Notes: generated by a model not told the origin, from the sequence alone. Numbered from the stretch's first letter, positions 11,437 through 53,323 are shown. The stretch is 64,000 bases of DNA from Marsupella aquatica (GCA_973895155.1 OZ316898.1:14786330-14850329), one strand, 5' to 3'. Numbers and translations: made by a program.

Positions 11437-11744
11437 GGTGGAAAGCATGATTGAGGGGTACCAAAATGTGCAAAAATGATTGGGATTCTGGGATGGCAGT
11501 CCTCACAATCCTTGGCACATGAATGGTTGAGATGACAAGGATCTTGAGCCGCCAAGGATGTTTTGAACTCACTTTGAGACAAAACATACTTAAGACTTAA
11601 TAACGACATTGGTGGGGCTAGGACATTATGAGGACTCCAAACGCGCGGAGTTCTCTGCCAATTTGAATCCCTTGAGAAGAGAAGTGCGGCCAACGTGAGA
11701 GTTGTACAGTTGTCCACAAAACTTCCCGCTCACAGAAAGCTTGG

Positions 11745-11920
11745 GCCGCCCATTTCTCACTTGCACTTGTTTCACTTGGGCGGAGCTCTATCCGCCCATT
11801 TCGCACTTGCACAGTTTGTTTCAAATGGGCGGATTCCTTTCTCATTGAAGTTTCACTTGGGCGAAGCTCTATCCGCCCATTTCTCACTCAAGTTTCACCT
11901 GGGCGGAGCTCTATCCACAG
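11745..11920. repeat. Subterminal palindromic repeats GGGCGGA-N6-TCCGCCC
   Basis: 3-4 copies of cacttgggcggagctctatccgcccattt inside the left end of OUTER. Confidence 0.8.
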
Positions 11921-12369
11921 AGCGTATGTGGTAATGAGGGTTTGAGCATTGCGGATTTGCCAATTGATAGAGGATTGCTGCTTGACGGGTTGTTGATTGC
12001 TGCGCATTGGGGGATTGGTCATTGCTGTGCATCGGGGATCGTGGATTGCTGCACATTGGAGGATCGTTGATTGCTGGGCATTGGCGGATTGCGAGCTACT
12101 TAATTGCGGTGGAGGATTACTGCTCGTTACTAGCTGGTTGCTGCTCGGTGGAAACTACTCGGTGAGTTGCAAAGCAGACATCAGAGGGGACTTAATTTTG
12201 TTATCGTGGCTAGAAGGTATAGCTCAAACTTCAAATTTATGTATATTCCTATATAGGCTATCGCTCCGTGTAGTTTAGTCCATCCTGTGAGGCGTACCTT
12301 TACATATTGTGGGCAGAGCTCTTATTGAGTGTTTAGTCACAGTTTTTTTGTTTATTCAGGAAGAGTTCG

Positions 12370-14794
12370 ATGAATACCACTTCTCCATTGACAATTGATG
12401 GAGGGGTGGATGTCAAGTTGATACAACGAGTATCCAATGTCCTGGCGAAAGCTGAGACAGGCATCACGAAGGAAAACACCAAAGCTCAACTGCCAAGAGC
12501 AGCTAAGAAAGTGAAAGGCCAGAGCTCTGATGTAACTTGGTCTCCGACCGAGTTCTACAAGGATGTTGCCTGGTTTGCTACAAAATTTGGTCTCCCCAAT
12601 GAGGGTGAAACTCCGCACAAGATTTTAGATCTCACCAAGGAACAGTTGAGTGCGTGCTTTGGTGAGGTAACAAGGAATGGCTATAAGCTAAGTACTTGCA
12701 CGGGTATTCCTCTTGATGAGATTTTAGCACTGTCTCAAGTGGTGGACGGGTATGAGAAGCCTATTAATGGAATTCTATCTCATACGTTTGTCAAAGGTGC
12801 CTATGCCGAGCGGGTGCTTCATAGAAAGGTAAACTGGGCAGCTTATGCATCGACAAAACTGAAGGGTCAGGTAACTCAGTGGTCACGAGATGGGAAAGGT
12901 AGGCCTGATGGCCCTCCTTGTGTTAGAAAGCCTCAACTGTATTCAGCTCCAAAGTCTTCGTCAGAGACTAAACCCGTCGTCTGTGACGGACAGTTAGCAC
13001 TTTTTGAGAGCCCTAAAAGTGTCGTGCCCAAGGAGCTTGGCAGTTGCAGCTTGACCAAGGTTAGGACAGTACCTCCTCCCACACCTATTCTATGTGTTCG
13101 TCCATCTGAGAAGAGACAGATTCCCTTGAAAGTGAAGAATGTTCTGGTATCTGCCATAGAAGTCGAGATATCTAAAATGAGGGGTCAGCTCGTGTCTGTG
13201 AACAAGAGGTTTGACAAGGTCCATTCTACCATGGACAAACTGAAGGTAATTCAGTCGGGACGTGATGATGTGGAGAGCTCATTACAGCAAGAGATTGAGA
13301 ACCTACGACTTCAAGAAGATAAAATCTCCAACGAAATTGATGCAGAAGAAATTGCAGTGGAAGAACTAACGACCGACATTGAGTTGGAATCCAACAAGCA
13401 GGGTGAAGGAGAGGCGATTGAAGAGGTACTTTGAGATTTCCTCCTTCATCTTGCTAGGATCATGTCCTTTCTCTGTTTAGGACCCGTTTGTTTGCGGTTG
13501 TGGACTTCAATGTGGGCTTTAGGCGATGGACCTTGTGGCAAGACATGTGATTGTTTGAAATGTTGATATTGCAGGTTAACAACGACTTGTTGGCCTTGAT
13601 GGGGACAACGCTGAGAACTCACGAGAGTACAGTCATCCAGCTTTCTAGCCTGTTGGAAGCCACCCGATGGGATTTGCATAGTGTGAAGGAAAGATTATAG
13701 AGAAAACAAGAGTATGACGAGAGTGTGCCTAAAATGATGTCCCGGATGTTTGACTTATCTAACAAGTTAACAGCAGAACGCCGAAAGATTGAATCTAATT
13801 TGAAGCATCAGGAAGTAGAGCTTGCGATTGTGGCAGACATTTTATGCAACCCATGTCCTGCAGTGATGCCATGTTATACCCTTACGTCCACTGAAACAAG
13901 TTTTAGCAGAGTTTTTGTATCAAGTTGTCCAATTTGTTGCAATGGATACCATTGCTACAATTGGATCCCAACATCATGTGGGCACACATATCATCCTGCA
14001 TGTTTGTTTACTTATATTCATTCATGTACGGGCGGCCCACAATGCAAGGCATGCGGGGCAATTTTCAGTAATGACTGGTTACAAACCTGGGGTTTAGATG
14101 ATGAGCAAGGCTACAAAGAGGGCACTCATATAGCCCTGGAGCATCACCCAATGGCCATGGAAGTGGAGGACCTATATGGGAAGAACTGTAGGCGATTGGC
14201 CCAGAGGCGACAGTTGGTGAACAATATGGTCTCAATCGAAAGAAAGGTATCCACTGATCTGCACTTTAATTGCTAGTTGGCTTTCAATTGATGAATTTGC
14301 AATCTTTGGAGATGGATGGGTTACGAATGGATGTTGAGCACTGTTCATTGTGTACTGCTTCTTATGGAACATGGTCTGCTGTTGTGGAGCAGGATTTGCA
14401 AGAGATTGTTGAGCGATGCTTGGCTTCTATAACACCTTCTTCCACGGTTGAGGATGCAGCTATTGAGGATTGCGGTGGTGAAGACAGATCATCCAAGATG
14501 GTCATGTTGTCACCAAAGGTTGAGGATGAGGATTCAGGGAAAAAATGGAAGTGTGATGTCGATTCTAGCAGGAAGGTGAAATTAATACCGTTGTTGAGTG
14601 CTAAGCCTGGTCAACATGTGCTAACGCCTAGTGCCACTCTCCCATTTTCCCCAGAGGCAGATGTCACCTTTAAGACATACTCTTCACTGAAGACTCCAAG
14701 CCCTTATGGACCGACAATACCTCCACCAAATTGCGATGGTGTAGATGCTAGGCCAAAGAAGAAGCTTTACAATATGCCTCGGATAACGTTTTAA
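12370..14794 (+). pseudogene. OUTER cargo: intron-containing coiled-coil + RING-H2 protein (putative E3 ligase), with stops
   Basis: Coiled coil at the end of ORF 12370-13434, GT..AG intron ~13426-13574, then RING-H2 CPIC-x13-CGHTYHPAC-x13-CKAC in 13725-14276. Confidence 0.65.
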
Positions 14795-15079
14795 GTCGTA
14801 CATTCTGTGGCTGTTGAAGATGTGGTGTGCATTTTGCAATGCGCATACCGTGATTTTCATGCCTTTTGTGTTTAAAACTTCCTCTATGCTCTTTGTGCAG
14901 CTTCGAAAGACCAGCTGCAAATCATATTTTTGAGCAATTCTCAGTTTCTCACTGATAAGTCTTCACTAAACCCTCTATTGGCAAATGTCATGTGCAAATG
15001 ATGAGGAACCTTTAGCAAAGTCTTGTTGGTAATAGCACGGTCACTCTCTAATCCGAGTAATCTTAGATGAGGGGTCTGG

Positions 15080-15830
15080 TCCTTTTTGAAAGGAGTGTAC
15101 ACAGGAGCGAGTCTTGTACAGTCCTTTTACACTTAGTTCATGACTTGTGTCAATTAAACGAGTTCTGAAATCTGCTCTGTCAAGGACTGTGAGCCCTTGT
15201 CAACCATTTTTTTACCTCTTAGATGTTCTTCTTTGTTAAGGACTGGGTGGCCTTCGTGAAGGAGTGGGTGTCAGTTTTCAAGGAGTCCATGTCCATTGTG
15301 AAAGGAGTCTAACTCCTTTTCCAAGGAGTCTATTTCCTTTTCCAAGGAGTCTGACTCCTTTTCCAAGGAGTTCAGGTCCTTCTGAAGCAAGTGCATGTCC
15401 TTGGTCAAGGAGTGTCACTCCTTTGTTAAGGAGTGCATGTCCTTTTTAAAGGACTGATGGTCCTTGACAAAGGAGCACTAGTCCTTTGAAAGGACAGTTG
15501 GTCCTTGACAAAGGAGCAATAGTCCTTTTGAAAGGACTTTCGGTCCTTGTAAAAGGAGTGTTACTCCTTTCCAAAGGACTGTTCATTTAGGAATGTTTGT
15601 CCTTTGGAAAGGAGTGTGTGTCCTTAAAGTAGTAGACGTCTTCGAAAAAGGAGTCGAACAGGGAGTGCATGTCCTTAGAGAAGGAGTGATTCTCCTTTTT
15701 GAGGAGTGGGTGTGATTCAAGTAATTTCTCCCTTCTGCAAACAAGTCCTTTCCTTGGTCAAGTCCCCGGTCAAGTAGAGTATGTGCTTTGTAGTATCTGG
15801 ATCTTGACTGTGTCCTTAAGGAGTGAACTG
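15080..15830. repeat. Degenerate array of AAAGGAGT-N3-ACTCCTTT palindromes (~21-22 bp period)
   Basis: For example aaaggagtctaactcctttt at 15301, with many variants. Confidence 0.8.
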
Positions 15831-16630
15831 TGAATGTGCCATTCAGTACTTCCATGATAGCATACGTGCAGCATAAGATTTTAGCAGTTTCTAAATACTT
15901 AGCCTCTCTGTTTGATTTGCTGCAGATGGCCAAGAATGAGAAGTTTGTCACCCTCCATCTGGCCAAGATTGAATCCATGTGGGGACTTTGTGCTGGCTCT
16001 TATGTTTATGAAGGTTGTTCAAACCTGTTGAGTGATGGTAGACCCTGTGCTTTGGGCAAGCACAAGCAAAAATTGAGAAGGCAAGATGCAAACTCCCCAA
16101 TGGGACCCCATTCACGAGGCAGAACCACACATGAGTGCTGTGTTGATGGGGCTGGTACACAGATGTACTACTTTGCTGTGCAGATTGGCGATGAAGTGAT
16201 TCAGTTTAATGAAGAGAATGGGGAGAAGCTAATGGGTGTGTCTGGTAAAGTTTTTAAGGACGAGCTTGATGGCTACCCTGACAAGATCAGGAGTGCATGT
16301 ACTCAAGTAATGAGTACATTGTGGACTATTACTTATGTGAAAGACAAAGATGCCTGTCGAGCACTTGCTGTGGCTAGGTCTTTACAGTCAACTAGTGTTA
16401 TTAAATGTGAGCCTAAAGTAGGACCTAGCCTCCCTGAGCCACATAGTAGTGTACATGTGATCATACCAAAGGAAGACAACAATCCTAAGTTTTTGAACTC
16501 GCTCAGCTGTAGTGACACTACTCCGGTGAAAGCCCACTTGGGGCCGCTCAGTAGACTTAAGGATGCCTGTGTGAATTTTGGAGGGGAGCTATTTGAGTCC
16601 CTGAAATCTATGAAGATCACCTACGAGTAG
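15830..16630 (+). CDS. OUTER cargo: putative zinc-ribbon OB-fold protein (RPA1 C-terminal-like)
   Basis: YVYEGC..C..K..CC..MYYFAVQIGD..FNEENGEKLMGVSG loosely matches the RPA1 DBD-C pattern (YxAC..C..RY.L...D..F.E.AE.LLG.SA). Likely start ATG ~15926 after an AG acceptor. Confidence 0.5.
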   Translation: MNVPFSTSMIAYVQHKILAVSKYLASLFDLLQMAKNEKFVTLHLAKIESMWGLCAGSYVYEGCSNLLSDGRPCALGKHKQKLRRQDANSPMGPHSRGRTTHECCVDGAGTQMYYFAVQIGDEVIQFNEENGEKLMGVSGKVFKDELDGYPDKIRSACTQVMSTLWTITYVKDKDACRALAVARSLQSTSVIKCEPKVGPSLPEPHSSVHVIIPKEDNNPKFLNSLSCSDTTPVKAHLGPLSRLKDACVNFGGELFESLKSMKITYE

Positions 16631-16820
16631 TATAGTGAAGTAGTTAGACAAAGTTGGAACCAATTACACTTGGATGTTTACTCCAATCTTTGTAAAACTA
16701 AGACTCAAGAGCAATCATGAATATATTTTGAAGCGTGTATATTTTTCCCCACTCAAATGACTTTCCTGTGGGACATAAGTACTACCTTTTAGTAGCGGCT
16801 ATTGAAGTAAGTTAGACAGT

Positions 16821-17366
16821 TTAACTCCACCTTGGGATGCGCTTGACTTCAAAACCTCCACCTTCTAGTATACTGTGGGACATAGGTTGCATTTTTACTC
16901 TTGCAGTGGTAAGTGAATATTCAACTCCATCCCATCCCCGCAGGGCACATATAATGGATGACAACTCCAGCCTCCCTTTCTCAAGGTTGTAGGTTTTGAG
17001 TTCTCTTAGGTTGGACTTTTCCAATATGAAATCTCTACTGTACATTGTCCTGCTCTTTCTGGATCTGGAACAGGTAGACAATGAGAATACTAACCATTCT
17101 TAGAGCTGGGAAGTGGTCCCATTTGGAAGCGCATCAAACTCTTCCTTAGTCCTTATGAACTAGTCAGGGATAGTCGATCCAAAAACATTTTGGGAATTTG
17201 GGAGTCTTGAATGGGAAGGACTGTAGCTATGTTCTAGACAACAAATACACAAACTCAAACATGAAGTCCAGATGATTGAAATTAATACATTCAAGTGATA
17301 TAGCCAAATAGACACGCCACTTGAGACTTCTCGGTTGAAAACTAAGCTTGACAAGAGATGGGCCAA
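16821..17366 (-). pseudogene. Decayed hypothetical ORF (OUTER cargo)
   Basis: ORFs 17160-17366 and 16821-17081 are in the same frame, separated by two stops. No recognisable domain. Confidence 0.3.
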
Positions 17367-17514
17367 TTAAAATGAACTTTATTGTGCACAAGGGATTTAT
17401 TACAAAACAGGTGCATCTTACTGCACATATATAGCGATTACTAACAAGAGACCTTTACTAAGTAATATTCAATGCTACCCTTCACTAGTGATATCCAATG
17501 CCTGCTTAGCCTTT

Positions 17515-17614
17515 ATTGTATACTAACTGAGGACTATCCACTGATATGGTTTAACCTTCAGTGGATAGTCCTCAGTTAGTATACAATCATATCAGTGGAT
17601 AGTCCTCAGTTAGT
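17515..17614. repeat. Perfect 30-bp hairpin with a third arm copy
   Basis: 17515-17544 is the reverse complement of 17558-17587 (13-nt loop); 17588-17614 repeats the right arm. Confidence 0.9.
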
Positions 17615-17929
17615 CCACCTTCAGGGAGCTCAAAGTCCTATGGAACAACAATCCACATAAATATTAGTGACAGAAATAGTCAAGCTCACGCAGGGAAGAA
17701 CAGTTCAGCAAATAGACTTTAGCCAACCTACTGTAGCAACTGTAATGTACATATATAAGTAAGACGGATTTTGGTCTTTTTAGCAAGAAGTACATGGCTA
17801 TAATATCTCCCAGGGCTCTAACTCTAGACTCAGGAAAACCCTGAGGACAGTTGTTTAGGACATAAGGGCAGACTGGGTACTGGGAATTTAGGACTAAGGA
17901 TTGACAAAAGTTTGCTAATTCAGGACTTG

Positions 17930-18480
17930 GGCCAGAGGACTCATTAAGTAGGGATGGCAGATTGAGGACTCAATCAGGGTGGAGGACTGATGACTCAGGG
18001 TAGAGGACTGAGGACTAAGGATGGAGGACTGAAGGCTCGGGGAAAAGGACTAAGGACTCAGAATGAAGGACTGAGGATTTGGGGCAGAGGACTGAGGACT
18101 CGGGCACAGGACTGAGGACTAGGGATAAGGACTGAGGACTGAGGGTTTAGGACTGAGGACTAGGGATAAGGACTGAGGACTGAGGACTTAGGACTGAGGA
18201 CTTAGGACTGAGGCAGAGGACTGAGGCAGAGGACTCAGACTGAGGACTCAGGGAAAAGGACTGAGGACTCAGGGAAAAGGATTGAGGACTCAGACTGAGG
18301 ACTCAAGGAAAAGGACTGAGGACTCAGGGAAGAAACCGAGGACTCATGGCAAAGACTAAGGACTGAAGCCAACGGATGAGGACTCCGGACGTTCGGACTG
18401 AGGACTCCGGACGGAGGAACTGAGGACTAGTGACCGAGGACTGAGGACCAGCAACAGATAACTGAGGACTAGAGACAAAA
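17930..18480. repeat. GAGGACT / CTGAGGACT minisatellite downstream of the OUTER transposase
   Basis: Dozens of gaggactga units. Confidence 0.9.
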
Positions 18481-18562
18481 GACAAAGGACTTCAAACGGA
18501 GAATAGAGGACTGGTGATGGAGAAAAAATGGTGAACACACCTCAGTATCCTCCTTCATATTG

Positions 18563-21500
18563 CTAGGAACCCAAGGATGCATATATTGCTGCCAGAGTCT
18601 CGGGCTCAAGGGTGTACATTCTATATCGTCCCTTTCCTGCCTCACATGGAGTGAGACCAAATCTAAGGTGAACTACTGTCTCAGCATGGGCGTAGCTCAC
18701 GCCAGCTAGATCGTTCACCACAAATTTGTTATCTCGCCCTGGGACCTGTTGAAACCACACTGCCCTCAAAGCTAAATCACCCTCGTTAAATTCCTCTCCA
18801 TACGAGTCCTTGAAACTCTTCTTCACGGTGTGCAAAGTCTGCTCACATTGAAGAATGTAGAAGTCCACATTCCACTTGTTACCTATCTCAGCCTTCACTG
18901 CAAAGAAGTCACCTTGTTGAACCAATTCGGCCAGCAGCCCATCCTCCCATTGGTACAGTCCTTCCCCCACTCCCATTTCTTCCACATCAGTTCTCACGTC
19001 ACTTGGCAGGACTCCTTTCACCATGACGAGCTTAAACTGTCCAGCCCAACTTATATTCTCACATTGCAAAGGTTCATCATCTAAGCAATGAGGACAAAAA
19101 CAACAAAGTTCTCTGACTTGAAGGAGAGTTGATAGGCGGTTACTAAATCCATCAAAGCAGTGTAAGGATCGGGAACCTAGGATAGGATCACAGTCCCATT
19201 TCTTCTTGCGATTGACAGCTCCCATTGGAATCTCCCAAAACAGGCGTCGAACAAGTTGGACGTCTCCATACTCCTTTTCTTGGCCCATAGCAAATTTGTC
19301 CTTGCAGAACAAAACCACATCATGGGCATTCTCCAATCGATGTCCATGGATTCCCTTCAGCTGTTCTCTCTCAATCCCTTGCTTTATGTGGCCTCCAAGG
19401 GCATCCTAAAAGCACACACCATAGTACTCATCTCAGGAAATGAAACTTGGATGATGAATGAATATAGAACAACAAATTTACTATAGGGAACTTCAGCTTA
19501 AAACACAATCTGGAATGAGCGGATGTACATGTAAAGTAATATTGCAACTTACAGCGACACCTTTTCCGTGCCCTGAAGCATGGAAATACCACTTCATTCG
19601 TGCACCAAATCTTTTGTAGTATCTGGATACATAATAAAAAGGTCTGCAAGCCTTGAACTGTGAAGCAGCCCCATCTGACCAGACCCAATGTTGCTCAAAC
19701 TGAATTCCTTCCTCCCTCATCCACTGGTTATGAGCATCCATGCAATGTTGGACGAAGAGAGTGTCGTGACAATTGTCATCACTGATATAAAAATGATAAT
19801 CTGCAATAATGTCTCGACCACCCTCCTCATCCAATGCCATCCGAACCGTACTTCCAACAGCAGCCTCCAGAGATTCCACACAATCTTCTCTATGCCTATA
19901 AGTGACATGAATCAACAAAGTGACCTGTCTATTATCCCAGTGTTGACTCTGTATCTCATTTTGGATTTTGAACGTGTAATTTTCAGAGAAATCAATAGAT
20001 GACACTATAGTTCCTCTAGGGAAAGTTTTCAAACAAAGTTTGAATTGTTATGACTGCCAACGTGCTCTGAAATTATGCACAATGAATGTCTTCATTGTAT
20101 TCAAAACCTGACTCTTGAATTCACCCATTGAAGTTCTCTTAAACACCATTCTCAACCGTTTTGACTTTTTTGTAGCACTCTCGTCTGTTCCTTTTTTCTT
20201 CTCTCTCTTTTGCTGGGCTTTCTCATCTAACTCCAAATACTGAAATGTCTCCCACTCAATAAATTGCTTGTCAACTGGATCTAACTCAGATGTACACCAA
20301 TCCAACTTGTTGACACCACAATTCTTACAGGAACCCATGATACATTTCTTTCCATGCCACTGCTTCCCCTCAGCTCTTGGACAAAGAGCTCCATCTATCC
20401 AGCCCCGTACAGATGTTATTGTTGTTCTAGAAGCTACACAACTCTGCAAAGGAGCATCAACTGATGTGCAAATGGGGCAATCACAAGAGCAATGCTTACT
20501 GTGTTCATGCTTCCTGAATTTGTTGATTGCCTCCTTCAAGAGGTCCATTTCAACATGTTGCTTACAGCAACAAACGTTTCTGTCTTTCATAGGACGAATG
20601 TAGTAAGGCTTCATATACTGAAAAGACCTGAAGCCTATATTAACTCCATTCTCATCTCTGCTGCAAAACTCCTGGAATTTTAGAAAAAACTCCACCTGAA
20701 AAAGATGCAAACCTTGCTTCAAAACATATTCAATCATTGTAAACAAAGATGCAGTAGAGTTCAAATTGCTTACTGATGAACATGAAAGCTCCTGTACCCT
20801 ATTGTAAACCCTATTTGAATGTCATTGATAATGACAAATTAACAAAATCTAACCTGGGTATCCTCCAGCCAATGCACCCCATGCTCCTCGTACACATTTA
20901 TACTCAATCTTAGTCTAGCCTTGTCCTTGGCGCAAGGAGAGATTCGAGTATTTGATTCCCAAAACTTTTCCACAATTCTTCGGACTTCAGCTGAAATTTT
21001 GTCGCTTCTCACTTTCCTTTCCCCCATTGGAAACCTTATCAAACAATCGGAATCTATGGACTTCCTCCTTCTTGAAGCTTTATATATGATTTGCCGTTTG
21101 ATACCCAAAGCCCCAGCCACTGAAGTCTGATACCTATTCACTACTGTGGCCTGGCTTGCCAATGCAACTGTCAAGATCTGCTTTGCACCTAGATGGTCTT
21201 TCCGCTTTGCAGTCTTCACTTTTTGCAAGCAATTCTTTAGGTCAGCAACTGCAGCAAGTATCGCTACATCTCTCCGACGAGTCCCAAAAACTGCAGGGAG
21301 GTACTTCTTCAAGGAAGGATGGAGCATAAACTTAGTGAAAAATAGCTTCCTTGCAGACAAATTAAATTTGTCCAATCTACTCAGGATGGATGTCACCGCC
21401 ATAGACACCTGAGACTGAACACTTCGTGTTCTCCTATTGGAATTCAATTCATCTTCTAAATCACCAGCAGACCCACATTGCCAAGCCTCTGTGCATGTAT

Positions 21501-21945
21501 TACCCTTTTTCTTCTATTACCCTTTTTCTTCCAGTATGCTGCTCGCTTCCTTTGAGCATCTCGTGCTCTAAATTCTGTTGAAGCAGAGGATTGATAGTTT
21601 GCTTGCCTCGAAGCTGAACTCTCCCGCTGCAGCTCTGAAGTTTGGCCATGCATGCTCTCACCGAGAAGTTGCCCATCTAAGGACCGAAGACGTGCTTCTT
21701 GACGCCCTATGCAATTGCGGAGAGTTTGTCTTCTTTGTGTCAATTTGTCACATTGTAATTGTGTAGACTGTAGGATGCTAGTAGCTTGTGTACTTGCATT
21801 CACTATGATGTCGGCAGCCTCTTGGGAAGCCTCCGCACGAATTCTACTCGCTTCATTCTCAGCAGATGAAATCATTTGCTGGCATTTGTTTCGCGCATCT
21901 TCCAACAAACCCTGTCTAGCCACATCGTTACTATTACCACCATGT
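18563..21945 (-). pseudogene. Sola2-like DDD transposase of OUTER (main part; 5' exon pieces at 52361-52275 and 51927-51889)
   Basis: Catalytic motifs IDFSENY..EIQSQHW, WSDGAASQFK and HGKGVA|DALGG (spliced across intron 19552-19406). Cys-rich region RNVCCCKQH..CSCDCPIC. In-frame TAA at 20048. Confidence 0.85.
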
Positions 21946-22571
21946 GCAAATCACTATATTCATTAAAACTGTACTTTTAAAAGTCCATAAGATGAACCCT
22001 AAAGTTAATTTATTTCAGGCCAAATTTCTATTAAAGCATTCCCAAAAGCTAATTTTTTTCAGCCCAAATATACACTTTTGAACGCCCAAAATTTTGTTTT
22101 TTTTCACCCAAATGTTTAATAATAACTTAAATTATATATTCTAATTAATTTAAAAATTAGAGTAAATTTAATTTAGTCCAAAAATCAGAGGCCAATACCA
22201 CTCAGACCATCTATAAATTAAAAAATATAGATGGTCATAAATCAAGGGTCAAAATGAGATTGACCCACTATATAATTATTAAATTGTCCAGTCCAGTGAG
22301 AGAGCCTCACACTAAGCATATATCCTAATTATTTACTTTATCCTACATGTTCAAAACATATCCTTTCAAGACATAATATGAATGTACAATTCAGGGTAGG
22401 CACTAGAGCAACCCTATCTCCTAATGATCAAGACAAAACTCATTTGAACAAGAAAGTCTGCTTCCTGATTTATCATAGCGGATGTCACGGTCGCAAGTAT
22501 CTCTTGCATGGTGGTTCTTAAACTTATTGGTGAGATCCCTAGTTCTGAGAACTTTCCAAATAAAATGCCTT

Positions 22572-23480: not shown

Positions 23481-23818
23481 AAGCCCTTAGTCAATGCGAC
23501 TCAAAGTTTAAACAATTACTACGGAGGAAAACTCTCAAAATTTGAAATCAAACAAACTTTGTTATAGCATTTGAAGTAGAGAGGAACGACCCTGGGGCGA
23601 CCCTCCTAGAAAAACATTAATTACATTCAATTGCCATTTTTTAGATCCAAAGTATACGTGGGTCAAACCCTTCCTCCACAGCAACGCTTTCCGAGGGAAT
23701 GCCAACAAAATCCTTTGAGGAAGGAGATTCTACGACGGAACTTTGGTCTGTAAAAAATTATATTATTACAAAGATAAAGCTTAGATTGTCATTAAAATAC
23801 CAAGAACCAAAGAAAGGG

Positions 23819-42600: not shown

Positions 42601-43210
42601 CCGATATTTTATCGGCACTAGAACCACCGCTTCCACTTGAACCTGGTTTCTTGAAAACAATTTTGCGGACAGGTTTGAACTCTTCACCCACAAGTCTCTT
42701 GTACTCTGCGTTCACCCTTGGAAGCATGATGGCATCACAATCTTGCACATACTGGCCGATCCAAGCCGAACCCATAACATTCATCTCTCTTGCTGCCCGA
42801 ACATCGGCAACAAGGGGATCTTCTGGATAACTATCCATCGATTTCTCATCAAAGTTATCGAGAGTAACAATGAGAGATGTGAAACCCTTGCGCCCACACA
42901 TTGTCAAGAAACTAAGGCCCTCTGTCAACACTTTTCCCTCCCCGTGGCCAACCATGAACTCGACGACGGCAACAGCAATGACAGGGCCATACAAAACATT
43001 AACCTTCGTCGATTTTTGCAACTGGACCCAAAGGATTGGGGTAACATAGTCTTCGAAACCCGTGGACTGTAATTTGGTGTCACGGAAGTACCATGACTTC
43101 TTGATACACTTGATCTCTTCACAAATGTCTTCACTTGTCCAAATTGCATTGGTGAGGCTTGTCATGAGACTTTCTGCCTCAGCAGATCCACTCTTTCCAC
43201 TAGCAGCCAT
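39667..43210 (-). CDS. INNER cargo: ParB-like domain fused to a beta-class N6-adenine/N4-cytosine DNA methyltransferase (3 exons; apparent 1-bp frameshifts at ~42320, ~41372, ~40685)
   Basis: ParB-N-like LHVDNL..IRPVDRLHVENIK..NP..YRIIGGNHGARA. MTase LHVGD..LAVADIPYG (motif IV) .. IWEK .. YQKPVGL..HFSEKEDWVIDLCCGTGST..GCAVD (motifs X-I-II), the circularly permuted beta order. GT-AG introns 42260-42099 and 41028-~40780. Confidence 0.85.
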
Positions 43211-43430
43211 GGAAAAGTCTGCAAATAAACAAATTCCAATGCAAAGAGCGATAAAATTATCGCCGCCAATCTCACAGCACATGTGGACACGACATCTCAT
43301 CACACAAGGACAAAGAGACCGATAAAATTATCGCAAAAGTGAGCCTTCTTTAAATTGACGGCCGAGTGTACAGGTCGAAGAATCAGCTATGGAACCCTAA
43401 ATCCAAAACCTTAACCCCTAAACCTAAACC

Positions 43431-44084
43431 CTAATCATAGTTGAACCTCGCCAGAGCGAAGCGTTCGATCCGCTTCTTGGGCCATTGGGGAATATGAGTG
43501 ACGCGATGATCATAAGCCCACAACCAATGGAAATCAACTTCACCAGTCTCAGGATTCACTACTGCTACTGAATACCGGCGTGACGGAATGTCACAACAAG
43601 CATTTGTGCAGCATGGACAGATCTCACCATTGGCAAGGACGTTCGTCCACAGGCAACTTACATAGATCAAGTTAAAGAGCCCACAGACCGGCTGGGGGGG
43701 GAGTTGACGAATCTTGTATGAATATAGTTTCCCACCAGTGTCAATAAAAAACTCGGTGGCAAGAGGATTGTCCAGCTCGTCAATCACATCCTGAATCTCA
43801 TCGAATGCTCTACGTCTGTTGTCGGCATAGAATTCTGGCTCATAAGCAGGATTTCCCTTCACAACATGACAGCAGTGGAGTATAAAACGTCTTACTGCAC
43901 CGGTTTTCAGAAAGAGTAGGATAACTCTTCTAGAAAATCCAACATATCTATCCCACCGAATATAAATTTCTCCCCCTACCTGATCTACGTAGAAGTGAAA
44001 TGCGTTATGGTAAAACGGTTTTACTACCAGCCTGCATATCTTTAAAATTAGTGACTCATCCAGCCTCCTTAGCTGGTCCAGCAT
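43431..44084 (-). CDS. INNER cargo: hypothetical 217-aa protein with Cys cluster
   Basis: Intact ATG ORF containing ICPCCTNACC. No recognised family. Confidence 0.5.
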   Translation of the reverse strand: MLDQLRRLDESLILKICRLVVKPFYHNAFHFYVDQVGGEIYIRWDRYVGFSRRVILLFLKTGAVRRFILHCCHVVKGNPAYEPEFYADNRRRAFDEIQDVIDELDNPLATEFFIDTGGKLYSYKIRQLPPQPVCGLFNLIYVSCLWTNVLANGEICPCCTNACCDIPSRRYSVAVVNPETGEVDFHWLWAYDHRVTHIPQWPKKRIERFALARFNYD

Positions 44085-44436
44085 GGCTCCATTCCCTCAT
44101 TCTGGAGGATCCGGGAAGGGTACAAAAATGCGTCGCTCGAGCATGGCCTGATCACCGAATAGAAATCAGGAATAAATTTTGGAGAACATACTAATTACAA
44201 TTCTACAAGTTTCATCCAACTTTACAGTACCTTGTATAACGGGCTGTGAAGCCAATGCACTTGTCAGCTAATCGTCCGAAGAGGCGCAAAAAAATACACT
44301 CTGGACCACACAACCCGAAGTCAGGGGAGGCAAAGTCAATTATATTCAAAGTGTTTCTTTACAAGCACCCAAAATCGACTAGAGGAATGAGGAGTGCGAT
44401 AAATTTATCGGATGTTCGCTGCAATGCCTCATCCAC

Positions 44437-44984
44437 TCAGACTCGTCCATGCCATGCAAGAATTGTCCGCTTCCCGCTTTCTCCAAGATTCACCCAAACT
44501 CTAAGAAACGCATCTAATCGGTCATACGAGAAGCACCCAAGCATATCTATGGGAGGGAGGAAATGAGTTTCCTCTCGGAAGACCCTAGCAATATGTAGGT
44601 TTGAGAGAAGGACGGCATTAGGAATGCTTGCGAGCATTTTGTTTATGTCATTGATCTCACGGACTGCATATTTCAATAGCGCCCAAAATCGTGTACCAAC
44701 AACAAGATGGTTCCATTTCTTCGAGGTGGCTCCAAGACAAATGATTGTTCTCATTTGAGTCAGTCGTTCTTCTGGTAGAAGTTTAGGTCAAGGCCAAGGT
44801 GTTCATCTTGTGTGCAAGACAAGGCTAGGAGGGGCCAAATGTGAGATTCAACGAGTTCATCGGGAAGTCCATTCAACAAACTTCCGCATTCCACACCGGG
44901 CACTTTTCCTCGAATATATTTCCTACGCTCGTGGGCTAAAACGGATCCCATCTTTGCAACGATTAGATTCTCCGATGCAGCCAT
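44437..44984 (-). pseudogene. INNER cargo: F-box-like protein, frameshifted at ~44757
   Basis: LLNGLPDELVESHIWPLL ... LGATSKKWNHLV..RFW is an F-box-like pattern. Confidence 0.6.
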
Positions 44985-47599
44985 GAAGCAGAGCTACCAA
45001 AACCACCAATAAAAATACCTTCAATCACCAGGTGTAACCAAACACAGTACCAACCCTGCACGACAGTTTAACGATTAGGACTCGTGACGTATTATATTTG
45101 CTGCGCAAGGGTAGGACTTGTTTATTTAAATATGTCCTTCCAAGATGCGCCTCAATGAAAAGGTCGAAACACTCATCGTGAAAGGTTCACCCAAGGGTCT
45201 TCGTTCCAAATCTTACAACAGAAGTGAGCCTGTTTGTGGTACTTGTTATCAAGACGACGACAACAATAGTTACAAGAAAACTCCAAAGAATGTAAACACG
45301 CCATTAACATCAACCTCGAACGAATTGGAACTCCTGCATCATTCATTCCACAGAATTCAATGCGGAGAGGATTCTGCCTATCTCCAGGATCAGTACCACC
45401 CATCCACAATGCTCCTATACCGATGGGGAGAACTTTGAGTCACACGAGTCTCTTGTACAACCGGCGTGCATGTTTGACACAATTTTCAAGGAAGACAGCC
45501 ATTTGTCACAATACCTGTTGTCCACGGAGTGCAATCGACCTTCCGTTGTGCCTCCTAAACCCGGCAACACTGTGACATCAGAGATGAAGATGAGTCTCCA
45601 AACAAAACAAAGGAAAATGATTCTCACAGGAGGATGCGATAAGTTTATCGCACTCCGCATTCGAATTGAAAATATGACTTCCTCAAACACCTAAGCCCTG
45701 AATTCAATCTTTCACAAAAATGACAACTCCGATAAATTTATCGGATTCTCAATTACTCCTCTTTCCATGAAAGGAATGGAGACTCCGATAAATTTATCAG
45801 AATGAAGGCAACACCTCTCTAAACACACTCGATCAAATGATTGCAACAGAGGAATGCAAAATGCGATAAATTTATCGCAGTCCGCTCGGATCTGGACATT
45901 TTACACTAAATGACTAGTTAGTCTTACATGGAGAACTTGAACAGGAATGGTTGTTCTGATAAATTTATCGGGTTTTCGGTAGAAAGAGTCGAATCGCTTG
46001 GGAGGAATGTAAGACTTGATGGGAGTTTGGTATTCGCTCTCAGTTAGGAGATATTTGCTCTGGCAAAAGCAAACGTTTTATGGGCAGCCCGCTCCTCTTT
46101 ATATAGGAGACGCTCTAAACCATGGTTAATTTCCCCTTAACCATGGTTAAGTTCCCCTTTTACCTGGGTTAGTGAGTGGTCATTCCTGGATTACGCGGTT
46201 CGGACCAAGTTACTCGCAGTTCGGACTTTTTCACTGACGGAATGTAAAACCCGATGCACGTATCGCTCCCTGCATTCCCGCGGCGATGCAATGGAGGAAA
46301 GTGGCGTTTCGGAGAGTTTTTGCCAGTTTTATCGGTCATTGCATTGCCTTAGAAAAAAATGGGATCGGGCTAAACGAGAACTCCGACACACTTCTCGGTC
46401 GGTCCAAAATCGTGTTTCTTGAGAACTGGCGGAGGTGGTGGAAGCTTCAGAACTGGAGGAAGTAGACATTGTAAGGGGCAAGTGAGATTTAAGATGACAT
46501 GTGGCAGCAATGGAGAATGCCACAGGCTGCAAGAGGGCACTAACAGGCAAACAATGATCGAGGGAGCGACCCAAAAGGGAAGGGAGCAAGGCAGAAATAA
46601 AAGCCTTAGAGCGAGGCGGAAAAAAAATCCCAAGAGCGAGGCAAAAACAAAAGCCCTAGAGCGAGGCAAGAGGGAGGCAAGGAAATGAGGCCTCAAGCGC
46701 AAGGCCTGCCTTCCTATACCCCCTGCGAGCGAGGAGTCCGAGGAGGCAAGGATCCGAGAGGGTACGGAGGCATCAATGCGCGCCAATGATGGAGACCCTC
46801 CTCGGTGCATGTGATCGTGAGTCACCGATGGTGTGACCACTCACGACCACTCGCGACTCACCTACCAATTTTAAACTTCCGAGCTGTCAGCGGTGTGTGC
46901 TCGCAACTCACCTATCACTCGTGAGTGATTGGCTGACACCCTATCCGATGTCTACTTGTGTGCTGGGTGCGTGCCTCATCCACCCGTGCCTGATCTGTTG
47001 GTGTCCACTCGTGTGCTGGGTAATGTGTGGGCTTTTTGCCTCTCAAACTGAGTATAGACCTCCCACAATCCATTTTTTGGTTCATTGTCATTTAGACAGT
47101 GATTGGTACGATCACTGACTCTCCTCTGTCCGAGTGCCTTGTTTAGGTCCGCATGGTTGAATGCAAGGTTTAGTAAGGGCACTGGTGAGCACTATGGTGC
47201 TAAGAGTTACAATGCTGGCATCCAAGGTACCCATTTAGCTTGTACAAGGGTGGGCAGAGATATATTGCGGAGCAGGTTAGTGATTTTATTTATTTATCTT
47301 AGAAGTACTAGCTCAACTACATCTAATTCAATACCTTTAAGCCAAACCTAGATTAAGATTTACACATTAGGTTCTAGATCATATATTTTACTCATTTCTA
47401 GACCTTTATCCACAGTCTAGCATGTGTAGAACTTACTGTACCCCTTTATGTGATTACTAACATAGTTTCTAGAAGTGGGTCGGAATTATTTCGTGCCGAC
47501 CTGACTATGTCATCTTAACTAGCATTTTAAACTGGTATATAAAAGCATAAGCAAGATAGTTTCACAAATAGTTTTGACATAATTTCAACTTAATAGTTG

Positions 47600-47925
47600 G
47601 AGTAGGGTCGAAATAATTCCGACCCAACTTATCAATGTTTAGTCAATTAAATCATTTTAAGACATATTGTTGGAGGAGGGTCGAAATAATTCCGACCCGA
47701 CTTGTAAATGTTTAGTCAATTAAATCATTTTAAGACATATTGTTGGAGGAGGGTCGAAATAATTCCGACCCAACTTGTAAATGTTTAGTCAATTCAATCA
47801 TTTCAAGACATATTGTTGGAGGAGGGTCGAAATAATTCCGACCCGACTTGTAAATGTTTAGTCAATTCAATCATTTCAAGACATAATGTTGGAGGAGGGT
47901 CGAAATAATTTCGACCCGACTTGAA
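47600..47925. repeat. 73-bp x5 tandem array containing palindrome GGGTCGAAATAATTCCGACCC
   Basis: Palindrome starts at 47605, 47678, 47751, 47824 and 47897, with an inverted variant at ~47477. Confidence 0.9.
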
Positions 47926-48026
47926 TGTATTTAGGGTTTTGAGTGATTTTACAATATTTTTTGGAGGAGAGTCCAGATTTTGAAACATGATTATAACATG
48001 GGGAACTTAACAATTTCTAAGTTTAT

Positions 48027-51000
48027 TTGAATACTGAAACACTCGGGGTTGGTCGCATCAGTATAAGAATATCTGATATTGTTAAGGGAAATCAAAAATT
48101 GCCATACTCGCACCCTGGAGCTGATACAATAGAAGAGGCCTTGCATACCTGGGTTATCTGGGATGTTGCGCATGTTTCTAGAAAGGGCACTCTACGAGAT
48201 TTTGGCGTGTTTGGTAGTTCAAATATTTTCAATGATCTTCCATTAAAAGAATTTACACTACGTTCCAACTGGATGGCGGAGGAGGTTGATTTGTATGACG
48301 CTTCTCATTGTCGAAAGGTTGCAACAGGTGTTATCACGGTCCCATTTGAAACAGGTGCCGTTGACGATGAACTTCTTGTTGCAGATCATGTTGGTGTTGC
48401 TGTTGTGAATATCAATGAACCCGGATTATTTCCAAATATCCGTGTTGGTACCCCTGGCTTGGTGAGGTGAGAAATCAAATCCCTTCTATTGATTTCGTCT
48501 CAAAGGTTTCTTGGGGATATCCTTGAGGAAGTTTCAGAGAAGTGGATGGAGTCGGGTCGAACTAAGGGCGATCCGGATTCGGATGGTGATGGTAAACCTA
48601 CAAAAAGACCATACAATTTCATTAGGAGGACAAAAGTTGATCTTGAGGAGAGGAAGAAAAGGCATTTGGAGTCGAGTGCACTTTTGAAAATTAACGAGGA
48701 GTCCATTGATTCCATCCAAAGAGAAGGTTGTTGCAAGCTGAAGTGTTGCTTGAACATGCCTAGGGAGGACTTAGAGGCAATGAGGAGGGAATACCATGGA
48801 ATGTCAAGTGACAACAAAACAAGTCACATCTTTAGTCTCTTTGGGTGTAGAGAGGAGCAAGTCAAGAGAAAGGGATTTTTTGTTCTAAAGGGACGTGTGG
48901 TTTGTAAAGATGCATTTATTAAAATGCATGGGTTCAGTACAACAAAGTACTATGACTACAAAAATCAATACGAAGCTGGTTGCACAATTGGTTTCCATGG
49001 AAATCAGGGACAATGGAGGACACGATCAAGCACTTTGCACGCTCGCGCCTTGTTGGAGTCCATTTTAATCCAAAATGGGGAACCAATGCCACATCTTCCC
49101 TATGGTGGGTCCAACGGCACTGACACTATTGAATATCGGCTCCCATCTTGTTTTACTAAGAAGGAGATTTTCCAAGAGGTGTTTACCAAGATGGAATTAG
49201 ATGGGTTTGCTAAGGTTACTGAAGTTACTATGTACAACATCTGGAAAAACTCATTTGATAATTTTGACTTTCACAAGGGAAGTGCATTTGCCAAGTGCAC
49301 ATTTTGCATTGAGTTCAAAGATCAATTGATGCGGGAGAAGAGAAAAAAAGAGCGTGCAGAGATTGAAGAGAAAAGAGCGCGACATTCGTGAACAAATGTC
49401 AAGAAGATATGTTTACTATGCTCATAGGGTTCTTGCAAAGAAGGATCCTCAAAACTATCTTTGCATTATTCACGATAAGATGGATCAAGCCAAGACTTGG
49501 ATCCCCAGGTTGGTCCCCACTCCAAAATCCCTCTCTGGTAGTGGTCAGCCTTTGCCTATTGCTCTTACTGGGATGTTAACCCATGGAAGAGATCCTGGAG
49601 TGTATGCACATTTCAGTTTGACTGGACTTTGGCCTGGAGATGCAGACTTTACCGTGACATCTTTGGCCAAATGCCTCCGAGATTTGGAAGATTACACAGG
49701 AGACAAAACTGGAGACCTTCTTGAGGGATTGAATTGGAATGCAACTAGGCCAATATTTCAGTCCCTTCTAGACTTTGAAGCATTTCTGGCCAGTTACTTG
49801 GAACCCAAAAATGTTTCAATTGTTCGATTTCAAGGCATTGAAGATGGTCAGGAGACTAAAAAGTCAAGCACAGTGGATGTTGGTTCTAAGGATGATCCTG
49901 AGACTACTAGGGGCTCTTTCAAGCCCTTACCAAGGCACCTAACGTTGCAGATGGACAATTCAGGGAAAGATAACAAAAATCAATATGTGATGGCATTTTG
50001 CACTGAGCTTGTTAGCAGGGGGTGTTTGAAACTGTGCAAATGTCATTCCTCATGGTTGGCCACACCCATGAAGATGTGGATGCATTATTTTCTCAAGTAT
50101 CCAAACAGGTCAGATACAAAGAGGTTGCTACCCTCTTGGGGTTGATGGCTGAGGTTTGGGAGTGTGAAAGCATTCATCCTGTACCACGATTGATTCAAGA
50201 GGTTGCATCTTACAAGGAGTATTTGAAAACTTTCCAGGTGAAAGAGATAGAAGGTCACTCAAAACCAGTGGCATTTCTTTTCTCCATGAGGGATAATGTG
50301 CCAGTGTATCAATATAAAGCACATGTCAAGCAACCTTGGCTTCCGACAATGGGGAGGTCCATTTGGAGAACTGATCCCATCACAAATGCGCTCATTTTAC
50401 CGGAAGGCCAACCATTTGCAAAACCTATATCTGGGGATGTACAAAAGAAGGCTGGAGAAATCATCCCATTCCTTAATCGCTATATTGATTTCTTGAAGAA
50501 AAGTTGTAAGGATGAGACCTCTGCAGCATATAAAGAGAGATTTCCTCTGGTCAAATATTGGGAGAATCTTGTGCAAGCACTGTCCGAGGAACTTACAATA
50601 GAAGGGGAAGGGGAAAGACATTTGCCATTGACAACTGATTTTTGGCCAAAGACTAACCATGGCACAGGTTACAAGATGATTTTGGGGACATCTCAGCCGT
50701 CAAGTGAACCTTCTCAAAATCCAGAGATGATGGACCTTCAAAATGAGTACATGGAAGAGATGGAAGATCAAGCTGCACCCTTTGTTGGTGCACGACAAGA
50801 GCGAGAACCTGCACGTTGGATTCCTCTACAAGATATTCAAGAAGGTCACTTTGTATTTTTACGTCCAGAGGATGAATGGGAACAGGAAAATGGCAAAGGG
50901 CGTTTCTAGTTGGTTCAAGCTTTGGGTGGTGTGGATCCAAACCATGAGGTTCCCTCAACAGATTTGCAACATATTGAAGGGTCTTCTTCAACGTCTGTTG

Positions 51001-51296
51001 AGAGCATTCCTCTTAGGAATGCTCCTATGTTCCAAGTACAATGGTGGAGGCCTAAACATGGTAAGCATGATGCAAAGGATGATGTTCGATATGAACGTTG
51101 CTTTCAAACCACTAAGACTTGGGAGCTGGATCCTGGGTTTGACAATGTTACTCAAAGTTGGCAGTTTGCAAATTCTGCAATGTATGGGTTTAAGTCAGGT
51201 GCTAAAGAACAAAATATTATGGATAGAGGTTTGACAATTCCTAAGAATGTTTTGAAAACTCTCAAAATTTACATGGAAGGTATAATTGATGAGTAG
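48027..51296 (+). pseudogene. Sola1/DUF7869-like DDD transposase of MIDDLE, decayed
   Basis: GCCKLKCC, FAKCTFC, IIHDKMDQAKTWIP, LQMDNSGKDNKN and FLMVGHTHEDVDALFS motifs. Probable TGG>stop at 48468 and 50907; frameshifts at ~49385 and ~50020. Confidence 0.87.
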
Positions 51297-51888
51297 ATTG
51301 ATAGAACTCGTAGGTTACAAGTCTCCACTCAAATGACTTGTGATTAAGAGGGTCGAGTTGATTTCCATGCGTTTGTCTAAAGTGAGAAAACAAGACAATC
51401 AAATTAATACTCTATGATCTCTCAAAGCTATTGAATGGACTTTCTTATAATTATTATTTTATTTGTCTTAGTATATTTTAATTCTAGAAAATGATGCCAT
51501 TTCATTCTTTCTAGTAGGTTGGATATCATCCTAGTTAACTTTGTCTAGACACTATAGTCATTCCATTGTATTGGTGCTTAGTTAGATATCTTACTCAAGC
51601 TAAATGTTTGGAATATAGATGCTATCCAAGCTTATATGTTATTACTAGATTCTATCTATTTTCCAACCAAATGAACACTTTTATCACCCATTTTTTTTTT
51701 AATATTATCCAATTTAATATTTTACTTTCCCAAAATTTCATTTTTTTGTCCCCAAATTTACATTTAATGATGCTTGAATTTTCATTTTTCATCTTCCAAA
51801 TTTATAATTTTCATGCCTAAAACTATGTTTTTAAATCGCCAAATTTCCCTATATCCTTTATAATTTCAGTTTTAATGAATATAGTGAT

Positions 51889-52361
51889 GCAATCGATTGT
51901 CCATCGGTGATCTGTTGCTGCCTATTAGGTCAATTGCAAGATTGAGGGGGGCAAAAGGACGCAAAAAGGATTAGCTCAAAAAGGAGAGAAAAATGACTCA
52001 AAGATCATAAAGATTTAGTTGAACACCACTTCCATAAAAGTGGGACACACTTCCAAAATTGTTGTGCACACTTCCAAGAAGATTGGGACTTCCTAAAAGC
52101 CTAGACACACTTCCAAAGACTTGGCATGCAAGATCTCACCATCCAATCTCAACAAACTAATCCTAGCCATTTGGTGTAACACCTTGTCCACCCCTTGTAA
52201 ATTAGAAAGGACTGGAATCCTTTTGGTGGAGAAATTGGATATCCTTTTTGCCCCCCTCAAGCTTGCAATTGACCATTACAATAGGACTTGCGTCTGCTAA
52301 GGTTTCGCCTTTCTGATCTCTCTCTTGCTAGGGCATCGTGGACTTCAGCAAGACTGGCCAT
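51889..52361 (-). pseudogene. 5' coding end of the OUTER transposase, split by the MITE
   Basis: After removing the MITE and MIDDLE (one TSD each) the frame reads MASLAEVHDALARERSERRNLSRRKSYCNRQQQITDGQSIAHGGNSNDVARQGLLED..., continuous with ORF 21456-21923. Confidence 0.8.
51928..52274. mobile_element. 347-bp MITE related to the OUTER family
   Basis: ~32-bp TIR GGTCAATTGCAAG(A/C)TTGAGGGGGGCAAAA and TSD ATTA (51924-51927 / 52275-52278). The right end resembles OUTER's right end (tccttttggtggaga..atccttttt..cccctcaa). Confidence 0.88.
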
Positions 52362-53200
52362 CCGATGTCAGGCACCGCATCAAGTACTAGACAAAACTTG
52401 GGAGGTATTGAGCGGGATGCAGAGCATCTGAGCATTCAGATTCTACCTGATACTAGGCCAATACTTCTAAACTTGCCTACCCATTTGATCCTGCGAGCAC
52501 CATGGCAAAGCTCAACAATCGCCCGAGGTCCACCAACGCTTCAATCACAGTGCTCCTCCTATGGGCAATCTCCGAGATGCATTGCTGTAAATCAAACTTC
52601 CATGATGAATCATCAACTCCCGATCCAAAGCTTCAACTATCCAACTATGCCCCATCCCCAACAACTCAGCTCTCACATTGCGTGTGTATGGCACAAGCTC
52701 CTTCGATGAGTAATCGACCACCATAGCCATCCCTAACCCCTAAGCCCTTCGCTGTTGGTGCGTGCCCGTCCCAAGACAATTCAAGCCACTTGTGCTTAGA
52801 ACAAAATCCGCGATCAATTTCAAACATCGACTATGAGTCCTTGCCCACTTTAGTCCTTGTTGTCAAAAGCATCGACTATGAGTCCTTGTATTCAAACACA
52901 CTGCGAGCCGCAACTTGCTCTATTCAATGTCACAGGATCCAAGGAGAACATTTATACGTCGTCCTTGCTAAAGTCCAAGATAGGAATTACGCATCTAGAC
53001 TGTACTTCAACCGGTCCAAATGAATACTTAATGCATTTTTGATTGATATTCAAATCCAGCCTTTGATTTGGTCCTTCTACATCTTGGCCCTTGAGTGTAA
53101 CACCCCCCAATTTATTGCAAAAATCATGAGGACTCACTCCTTTTGGTGGAGACTTTGGAGATCCTTTTTATGTACCCCTCAATCATGCTTTCCACCAGAA

Positions 53201-53323
53201 GGAGAGTTAGCAACGTCCCATGCCGCTAACCCGCGGAAACGGCCTCGCCGAGGACGAAACCTGAGGGAATCGGCTTGAGCAAGGGGGTTTTCTTGGGTTT
53301 GGGGAGCCATGGGACACACCACA
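53201..53323 (+). repeat. 3' end of the split Gypsy LTR (ends CACCACA)
   Basis: Reverse complement of ~4102-4224 with about 4 mismatches. Confidence 0.88.

Follow-up and report, generated by a model that had tools for sequence, protein, structure and literature searches.

A window of 64 kb (64,000 bp) of DNA from Marsupella aquatica (GCA_973895155.1, OZ316898.1:14786330-14850329), whose positions are counted below from its first base, contains three large transposons inserted one within the other, here called A (outer), B (middle), and C (inner). This nest very probably arose when DNA transposons of the Sola superfamily inserted, one after the other and by a cut-and-paste mechanism, in a region rich in transposable elements (TEs). 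Their 4-bp target-site duplications (TSDs), terminal inverted repeats (TIRs), and DDD transposases support the assignment of all three to this superfamily, and on the basis of motif blocks compared by inspection A is read as a Sola2-type and B and C as Sola1-type elements. All three carry extra genes, as a preliminary description of the window had stated. B and C are members of a lineage of Sola1 elements with a putative accessory gene, ParB-like and beta-class amino-methyltransferase-like in sequence, on the strand opposite to the transposase.

Structure of the nest

An inverted-repeat scan across the whole window yielded three long-range TIR pairs (Table 1). The pairs and their exact flanking TSDs (AGAA, GCAA, and TCTT) bore out the preliminary description, and the native sizes, recomputed as the element minus its inserts and minus one TSD copy, agreed with the approximately 11.5, 12.4, and 11.7 kb given there. 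The 4-bp TSD (ATTA) of a miniature inverted-repeat transposable element (MITE) located in the 5′ transposase open reading frame (ORF) of A was exact as well.

Each insertion could be validated by an empty site or by a restored reading frame, as had also been claimed. The empty site of A is found in a paralogous sequence, which is continuous with a single AGAA and shows one difference in the 80 bases compared. Computational excision of the inserts restored ORFs at every junction: removal of B and the MITE gave a 205-aa minus-strand ORF in A running across both junctions, removal of C gave a 183-aa minus-strand ORF in B, and removal of a Copia long terminal repeat (LTR) retrotransposon from C gave a 558-aa transposase ORF, along which the hidden Markov model (HMM) of the transposase family is continuous, with model position 170 on either side of the insert. 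The empty site, the restored ORFs, and the exact TSDs together confirm the nest. The Copia element, which encodes gag, integrase, RVT_2, and RNase H domains in ORFs of 1253 and 322 aa (gag-pol), is the youngest insert of the nest and probably a member of a recently active family.

Table 1. Positions of the elements, genes, and repeats of the nest in the 64-kb window (aa, amino acids; HTH, helix-turn-helix)
Feature	Position (bp)	Strand	Remarks
Element A (outer, read as Sola2-type)	11437-53196		own DNA 11437-21949 + 51889-51927 + 52279-53196; native size 11,466 bp
TIRs of A	11437-11466 / 53167-53196		30 nt, 93% complementary; termini GGTGG...CCACC
TSD of A	11433-11436 + 53197-53200		AGAA, exact
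Cargo block of A	12337-16627	+	coiled-coil ORF 12337-13431, RING-like ORF 13701-14273, ORFs 14270-14791 and 15827-16627
21-bp palindrome-bearing repeat array of A	15233-15790		amid the cargo ORFs of A
Direct-repeat array of A, ACTGAGGACT core	17874-18499	+	just beyond the 3′ end of the A transposase
Transposase of A, read as Sola2-type	18566-21513	-	ORFs 20842-21513, 20051-20821 (Cys-rich), 19496-20047, 18566-19405
Further 5′ ORF of A	21459-21949, continuing beyond B and the MITE to 52367	-	
Element B (middle, read as Sola1-type)	21950-51888		own DNA 21950-28849 + 46417-51888; native size 12,368 bp
TIRs of B	21950-21981 / 51857-51888		32 nt, 91% complementary; termini ATCAC...GTGAT
TSD of B	21946-21949 + 51889-51892		GCAA, exact
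Cargo of B	22575-28841	-	ParB-like 26312-27634 (ISGQHSARA), methyltransferase-like 24575-25636, phosphatase-like 22575-23486
Transposase of B, DUF7869, read as Sola1-type	48471-50906	+	three overlapping ORFs in different frames
Element C (inner, read as Sola1-type)	28850-46416		own DNA 28850-32094 + 37974-46416; native size 11,688 bp
TIRs of C	28850-28881 / 46385-46416		32 nt, 84% complementary; termini AACACG...CGTGTT
TSD of C	28846-28849 + 46417-46420		TCTT, exact
Transposase of C, DUF7869, read as Sola1-type	29797-39335	+	N-terminal ORF 29797-31383, next ORF 31395-31625
Intron and catalytic exon of the C transposase	~31566-31854 (intron); 31855-32094 + 37974-39335 (exon)	+	Copia element between the exon parts
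Copia LTR retrotransposon in the C transposase	32095-37968	-	197-bp LTRs, 100% identical
TSD of the Copia element	32090-32094 + 37969-37973		GTTCA
Accessory gene of C, ParB-like/amino-methyltransferase-like	39670-43327	-	convergent with the transposase
ParB + HTH part of C	40792-42098	-	frameshift in the overlap 41340-41439
Methyltransferase-like part of C	39670-40773	-	DIPY for DPPY, then CGTGS motif I (beta-class order)
Third ORF of C	43434-44096	-	221 aa, Cys-rich
MITE in the 5′ transposase ORF of A	51928-52274		347 bp; TSD ATTA; A-like TIR GGTCAATTGCAAGATTGAGGGG and A-like subterminal sequence
Empty-site paralog of A	4186-4265	-	opposite arm of a 1.75-kb inverted repeat (4102-5854 vs 9807-11436 + 53201-53323)

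Transposases of the three elements

The transposases of B and C belong to Pfam family PF25273 (DUF7869), the match of which covers 49354-50909 in B and 37983-39338 in C (E = 3e-43). An HMM built from 76 DUF7869 relatives matched B (48471-50906) and C (31281-32223 and 37953-39335) and no other place in the window. This family occurs widely in marine invertebrates and is also present in a fern. Its three catalytic aspartates, D59, D140, and D182 in the restored ORF of C, are invariant among the relatives (60/60, 74/74, and 76/76, respectively) and are kept in both elements; in B they are found in HDKMDQ, QMDNSGKDNKN, and VGHTHEDVD. When the ORFs of all three elements were compared pairwise by BLASTP and phmmer, the B and C transposases were the only ones linked. 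A relative encoded on a 5.3-kb metagenome scaffold (L001) shows 62% aa identity to the transposase of C.

As references, the transposase of Sola1-1_Ec32 and a fragment of that of Sola2-1_Ec32 were taken from the curated Ectocarpus TE library (PMC12477816, supplements). Its curators obtained Repbase Sola1-1_PPa as the best BLASTP match of the former and Sola2-1_HM as that of the latter, and the two elements end in AACCG..CGGTT and GGCGG..CCGCC, respectively, with 4-bp TSDs in both. Four blocks of 6-13 residues are common to the Sola1-type transposase of the nest and Sola1-1_Ec32. By inspection, the first catalytic motif reads IDGMDQ in C and MDGANQ in the alga, the second QLDNTARENKNKY and QVDNTVAENKNNY, the third VGHTHDQIDQMFS and VGHTHIQIDQIFS, and the N-terminal motif FVRIWNKEFP and F.RIW..EFP. 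The termini of C (AACACG) and B (ATCAC) can be set beside the AACCG of the algal element.

The preliminary description had assigned one DDD transposase to each element and treated all three as a single Sola-like class. The transposases are present and the superfamily stands, while the single class divides into two groups, as the transposase of A comes from a family different from that of B and C. It gave no DUF7869 match and no detectable similarity to B or C by BLASTP or phmmer, and Pfam offered no family either for the ORFs of A or for ten long A-type relatives. With the A transposase, an exhaustive phmmer search gave 1,740 relatives (E <= 1e-3). Of the ten longest ones looked up, the best-scoring named sequence was that of the liverwort Calypogeia fissa, and others were from molluscs. 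The A exons are collinear with the C. fissa gene at 41-59% aa identity (HMM positions 24-195, 197-342, and 343-588). The motifs IDFSENY and WSDGAASQFK lie in ORF 19496-20047 and the third D in ORF 18566-19405, and a conserved intron follows GHGKG in the motif GHGKG..D. The invariant D columns of the A-type family (38/38, 36/36, and 32/33) are all retained in A; the family has a fourth invariant D, and the triad was chosen from the motif context.

About ten collinear blocks common to A and Sola2-1_Ec32 were recognized by inspection. These include CxCKxH, CxCxxC, CP[KR], C..C..CG, Q.[VI]EW, FP.G..V...DF.E, and S[ED]D..HD, and further DF.E[KN][FY], [ST]DG..[KS]Q[YF]K, and H[FG]KG..D..G...K. The ends are also similar, GGTGG in A and GGCGG in the algal element. 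A-like TIRs were found neither in the C. fissa locus (L003) nor in a Riccia sorocarpa locus (L004) containing homologues of the A cargo.

Accessory genes and element-private repeats

A profile search with the cargo of C returned a weak Spo0J match (E = 0.12) as its only result, and single-sequence PDB searches with the cargo ORFs of C gave nothing useful. The upstream exon of the accessory gene was modelled with AlphaFold from 19 homologues (predicted local distance difference test score, 78). Compared with the PDB, the model had Noc, ParB, and KorB as its top matches (E values from 6e-5 to 1e-3); the first nine were all of the ParB/Noc type (E values from 6e-5 to 8e-4) and the matches spanned both the ParB N-domain and the HTH. 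On the strength of this model, the accessory protein of C is predicted to possess a domain for DNA binding that is ParB-like. For the 221-aa ORF of C, no family was found in Pfam and no usable match in the ESM Atlas. The methyltransferase-like region of B (24575-25636) is degenerate and has no DPPY-type motif, and the ORF at 22575-23486 is NIF/FCP1-type phosphatase-like (Pfam NIF, E = 6.8e-17).

Homologues of the accessory gene adjoin Sola1 transposases elsewhere. The L001 scaffold contains the end of the ParB part and a methylase-like homologue (64% aa identity), in the convergent orientation to the transposase that is also seen in C. On an 8.8-kb Logan contig (L005) the transposase (40% identity) and the ParB (34%) and methylase (35%) homologues are arranged head-to-head as in B, and the methylase homologue has an unmarked Pfam N6_N4_Mtase hit on record. 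The accessory gene occupies the strand opposite to the transposase in every case, in divergent orientation in B and L005 and in convergent orientation in C and L001. The presence of the ParB-methylase gene beside the transposase in the two independent relatives L001 and L005 indicates that the Sola1 cargo and the transposase have been inherited together over a deep clade. The segment L005:273-8146, in which the Sola1 transposase stands head-to-head with a ParB/N6_N4_Mtase gene, is likely an intact relative.

The cargo of A is of another kind. Five homologues of it were found, R. sorocarpa among them, where three of the cargo ORFs are collinear in L004 at 28-34% aa identity. The RING-like ORF has a weak zf-C3HC4 match (E = 0.04), and no Fanzor/TnpB-type match was seen among the A ORFs in Pfam.

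All three elements contain private repeats. The palindrome CGATAAATTTATCG, counted with up to two mismatches across the whole window, occurs exclusively in C (19/19 copies), four of the copies being located in the transposase intron. All 12 window copies of the palindrome GCCTCGCCC-N3-GGGCGAGGC lie in B, at 26184-26366 and 28037-28702, and the 25 copies of ACTGAGGACT are likewise all in A. By analogy with the proposal made for algal transposons, the ParB-like protein may bind the palindromes of its own element.

Further arrays were noticed in B, a 73-bp unit repeated about six times upstream of the transposase (47520-47957) and, upstream of the accessory gene, a 65-bp unit that bears the B palindrome (28059-28513). 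In C. fissa, a GTACTAGTAC-type palindrome array (L003:13159-13517) is situated directly downstream of the Sola2-type transposase, which parallels the array of A.

State of the copies and order of insertions

All three copies are dead because of in-frame stops, frameshifts, and nested insertions. In A, the transposase gene has an in-frame stop at 20048-20050, a place at which the reading frame of the Calypogeia gene is open, and it is further interrupted by B and the MITE. The HMM coordinates of the B transposase overlap in three frames, which implies at least two frameshifts, and the accessory gene of B is interrupted by C. In C, the Copia element lies in the catalytic exon, a private stop is present at 31392-31394, a 1-bp deletion causes a frameshift near 31307, and the ParB-like gene is also frameshifted.

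The region 27500-33499 was compared with contigs of public runs. The runs contain approximately 58% of the sampled words, and so they represent close relatives and not the source sample. Run contigs covering 31392 have a cytosine where this C copy has the thymine of the stop codon, contigs in two runs have an extra cytosine at 31307, and contigs also pass from 32094 directly to the sequence beyond the Copia element. Ahead of 28850, the contigs show at least eight different flanks. The contigs without the stop, the 1-bp deletion, and the Copia element, together with the varied flanks, indicate that C-family copies free of these three defects exist at other sites.

Some contigs showed other features of the family. 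One from run X1 joins 31565 to 31855, by which the two transposase ORFs of C become fused exactly in frame. Homology resumes at this junction, whose acceptor in the C copy of the window is AA, not AG; tentatively, the contig may represent a spliced transcript of a sister C copy. In a contig of run X2, 144 nt of the 58-bp palindrome-bearing intron repeats of C at 31616-31761 are replaced by 29 letters, which suggests that the copy number of these repeats varies among C-family members. A 951-nt contig of the same run matches B (28464-28849) at about 99% and the match ends exactly at 28849; the remaining 564 nt are not C, and the contig could come from a copy or allele of B that lacks C.

The nest would have been formed in four steps. 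A Sola2-type element, A, would have inserted into a 1.75-kb repeat, followed by the insertion of an A-related MITE and the Sola1-type B into the 5′ ORF of the A transposase gene. A second, distantly related Sola1-type element, C, would then have entered the 5′ part of the B accessory gene, and finally the Copia retrotransposon the transposase of C. Each of the DNA-transposon steps left a 4-bp target duplication, as expected from a DDD transposase cutting with a 4-nt stagger.

In the surroundings of the nest, the arms of the 1.75-kb inverted repeat are 98% identical and each begins with TGTGGTG, with no obvious TSD. They may represent two oppositely oriented LTR-like copies, and a gag-like zf-CCHC ORF (2224-3534) adjoins them. 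A second Copia-type element with RVT_2, SH3_retrovirus, gag, and zf-CCHC domains is located in the right flank (54519-58186, minus strand).

Relation to known Sola elements

According to a 2023 review (PMC10741241), Sola elements as described by Bao et al. (2009) have a DDD transposase, 4-bp TSDs, and variable TIRs, and form three groups with almost no mutual similarity; most are 2-9 kb long, some exceed 15 kb, and they are present in the moss Physcomitrella. A, B, and C have the same DDD transposases and 4-bp TSDs, but are larger than the usual 2-9 kb.

The nearest known counterpart of B and C is Sola1-1_Ec32, a 21.5-kb Ectocarpus element published in 2025 (PMC12477816), whose opposite-strand gene has ParB-like and N4/N6 DNA-methyltransferase domains. 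It resembles B and C in the transposase motifs, the 4-bp TSD, the large multi-gene structure, and the opposite-strand gene with a ParB-like and, in B and C, a putative methyltransferase part, and its AAC-type termini are like the AACACG of C. However, it belongs to a brown alga and has 282-bp TIRs, whereas B and C are 11.7-12.4 kb long with TIRs of about 32 bp. B and C also differ in that the catalytic motif of the methylase is altered (C) or missing (B), in the additional NIF-phosphatase-like ORF of B, and in their element-private palindrome arrays, of which the available part of the paper makes no mention for Sola1-1_Ec32.

A shares the Cys-rich region, the catalytic blocks, the GG-type termini, and the 4-bp TSD with Sola2-1_Ec32, and short TIRs with published Sola2 elements, but at 11.5 kb it is larger than the algal element (4.6 kb, PMC12477816). 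Passenger genes beside a Sola2 transposase are known from the Sola2-Fanzor1 chimeras of Dictyostelium and Polysphondylium, described in 2013 (PMC3627910), from which A differs by its coiled-coil/RING-like passenger block. A limited literature search found no report of Sola2 in land plants, nor was a report of gene-carrying Sola elements in liverworts found in the literature search.

In Marchantia sperm, 4mC is written by the beta-class N4-cytosine methyltransferases MpDN4MT1a/b (bioRxiv 10.1101/2021.02.12.428880). There is a slim chance that liverwort Sola1 elements retain a ParB/beta-class amino-methyltransferase module of bacterial type, with a palindromic 'parS' particular to each lineage, and that this transposon-borne module shares a recent origin with these host genes or is their source.

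Alternative explanations

Several observations weigh against the interpretation of the nest as Sola elements with cargo of their own. Some of them concern the superfamily: the Sola1 and Sola2 assignments were made from motifs read by eye in the supplement of PMC12477816 and not from a computed phylogeny, no published superfamily label for DUF7869 was found in the literature search, and the profiles of the A-type family and of DUF7869 are weakly linked in statistical terms, hhalign giving an in-register alignment of the motifs D2 and D3 along 84 columns with P = 0.0098 and 4% probability. These points would suit elements of another DDE/DDD superfamily (CMC/EnSpm, Zator, Kolobok, or Ginger) with a superficial resemblance to Sola. 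The low hhalign score also fits the near-absence of sequence identity published for the Sola groups. CMC and Zator elements have 3-bp TSDs, and those of Kolobok are TTAA. The four insertions of the nest all have 4-bp TSDs of varied sequence, none of them TTAA, and the termini GGTGG, ATCAC, and AACAC are not the CACTA of CMC/EnSpm. Considering, in addition, the long motif matches to transposases that the Ectocarpus curators classed as Sola-1 and Sola-2, we regard membership in another superfamily as highly improbable.

The other observations concern the cargo of the Sola elements. In C, the N6_N4_Mtase match (6.6e-5, 23.4 bits) and in B the corresponding one (8.6e-4, 19.8 bits) are below the Pfam cut-off of 26.7 bits, the catalytic motif is changed to DIPY in the former and missing from the latter, the putative ParB-like region of B was called from its motif (ISGQHSARA, GxH.AR type), and the palindromes are predicted binding sites of the ParB-like protein. 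Moreover, no Sola2 transposase lies within 10 kb of the A-type cargo block of the Riccia locus L004 and no A-type block within 10 kb of the Calypogeia Sola2 transposase in L003. The extra genes might then be locus-specific captures or unrelated insertions, and the elements ordinary transposase-only Sola transposons with chance passengers, as a 7.7-kb contig with a Sola1 transposase (L006), on which no methylase-like gene was seen, would also suggest. For B and C, this is opposed by the ParB-methylase homologues that adjoin Sola1 transposases of 37-62% identity in L001 and L005, and by the same pairing in Ectocarpus Sola1-1 (PMC12477816). Chance passengers are therefore an unlikely explanation for the nest as a whole, and the question raised in the preliminary description, whether other copies lack the cargo, has a divided answer: the Sola1 cargo is kept in L001 and L005, whereas that of A stands apart from the Sola2 transposase in Riccia and Calypogeia. 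Because of this separation the A block is only a candidate for intrinsic cargo; it may have been captured recently, or the locus in Riccia may represent a gene of the host. The native sizes, called strikingly similar in the preliminary description, do lie between 11.5 and 12.4 kb, within 8% of each other, which might be taken as a real size optimum or constraint for these transposons. That meaning did not hold up well: A has a different transposase family and a different set of cargo genes, the Ectocarpus Sola1 and Sola2 elements measure 21.5 and 4.6 kb (PMC12477816), and three elements are too few for a test, so that a constraint seems improbable. The similar sizes reflect similar gene loads, and in the case of A they are probably a coincidence.

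Conclusions

The preliminary description had regarded Sola elements as generally transposase-only and had seen in the nest a little-described class of large multi-gene Sola transposons. The first view is contradicted by the Sola2-Fanzor1 elements (PMC3627910) and the 21.5-kb Sola1 with its ParB/methyltransferase gene (PMC12477816), and the second was overstated, as gene-carrying Sola elements were published in 2013 and 2025 and sizes above 15 kb were reviewed in 2023. Gene-carrying Sola transposons are already known from algae, and the nest represents a new example, from a land plant, rather than a new class. What is added here is a clean nest, a Sola2-type outer element with other cargo, two gene layouts, and evidence for C-family copies elsewhere without the three defects named above.

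With its TSDs, empty site, and restored frames, the nest is a self-validating case of transposition by Sola1 and Sola2 elements in a land plant. A ParB-like/methyltransferase-like counterpart of the module reported for the Sola1 of a brown alga has also been retained in a Sola1 clade of land plants, in two layouts and with lineage-private palindromes. The proposed self-recognition or self-marking function thereby becomes testable in liverworts, and the read data suggest that C-family copies without these defects exist.

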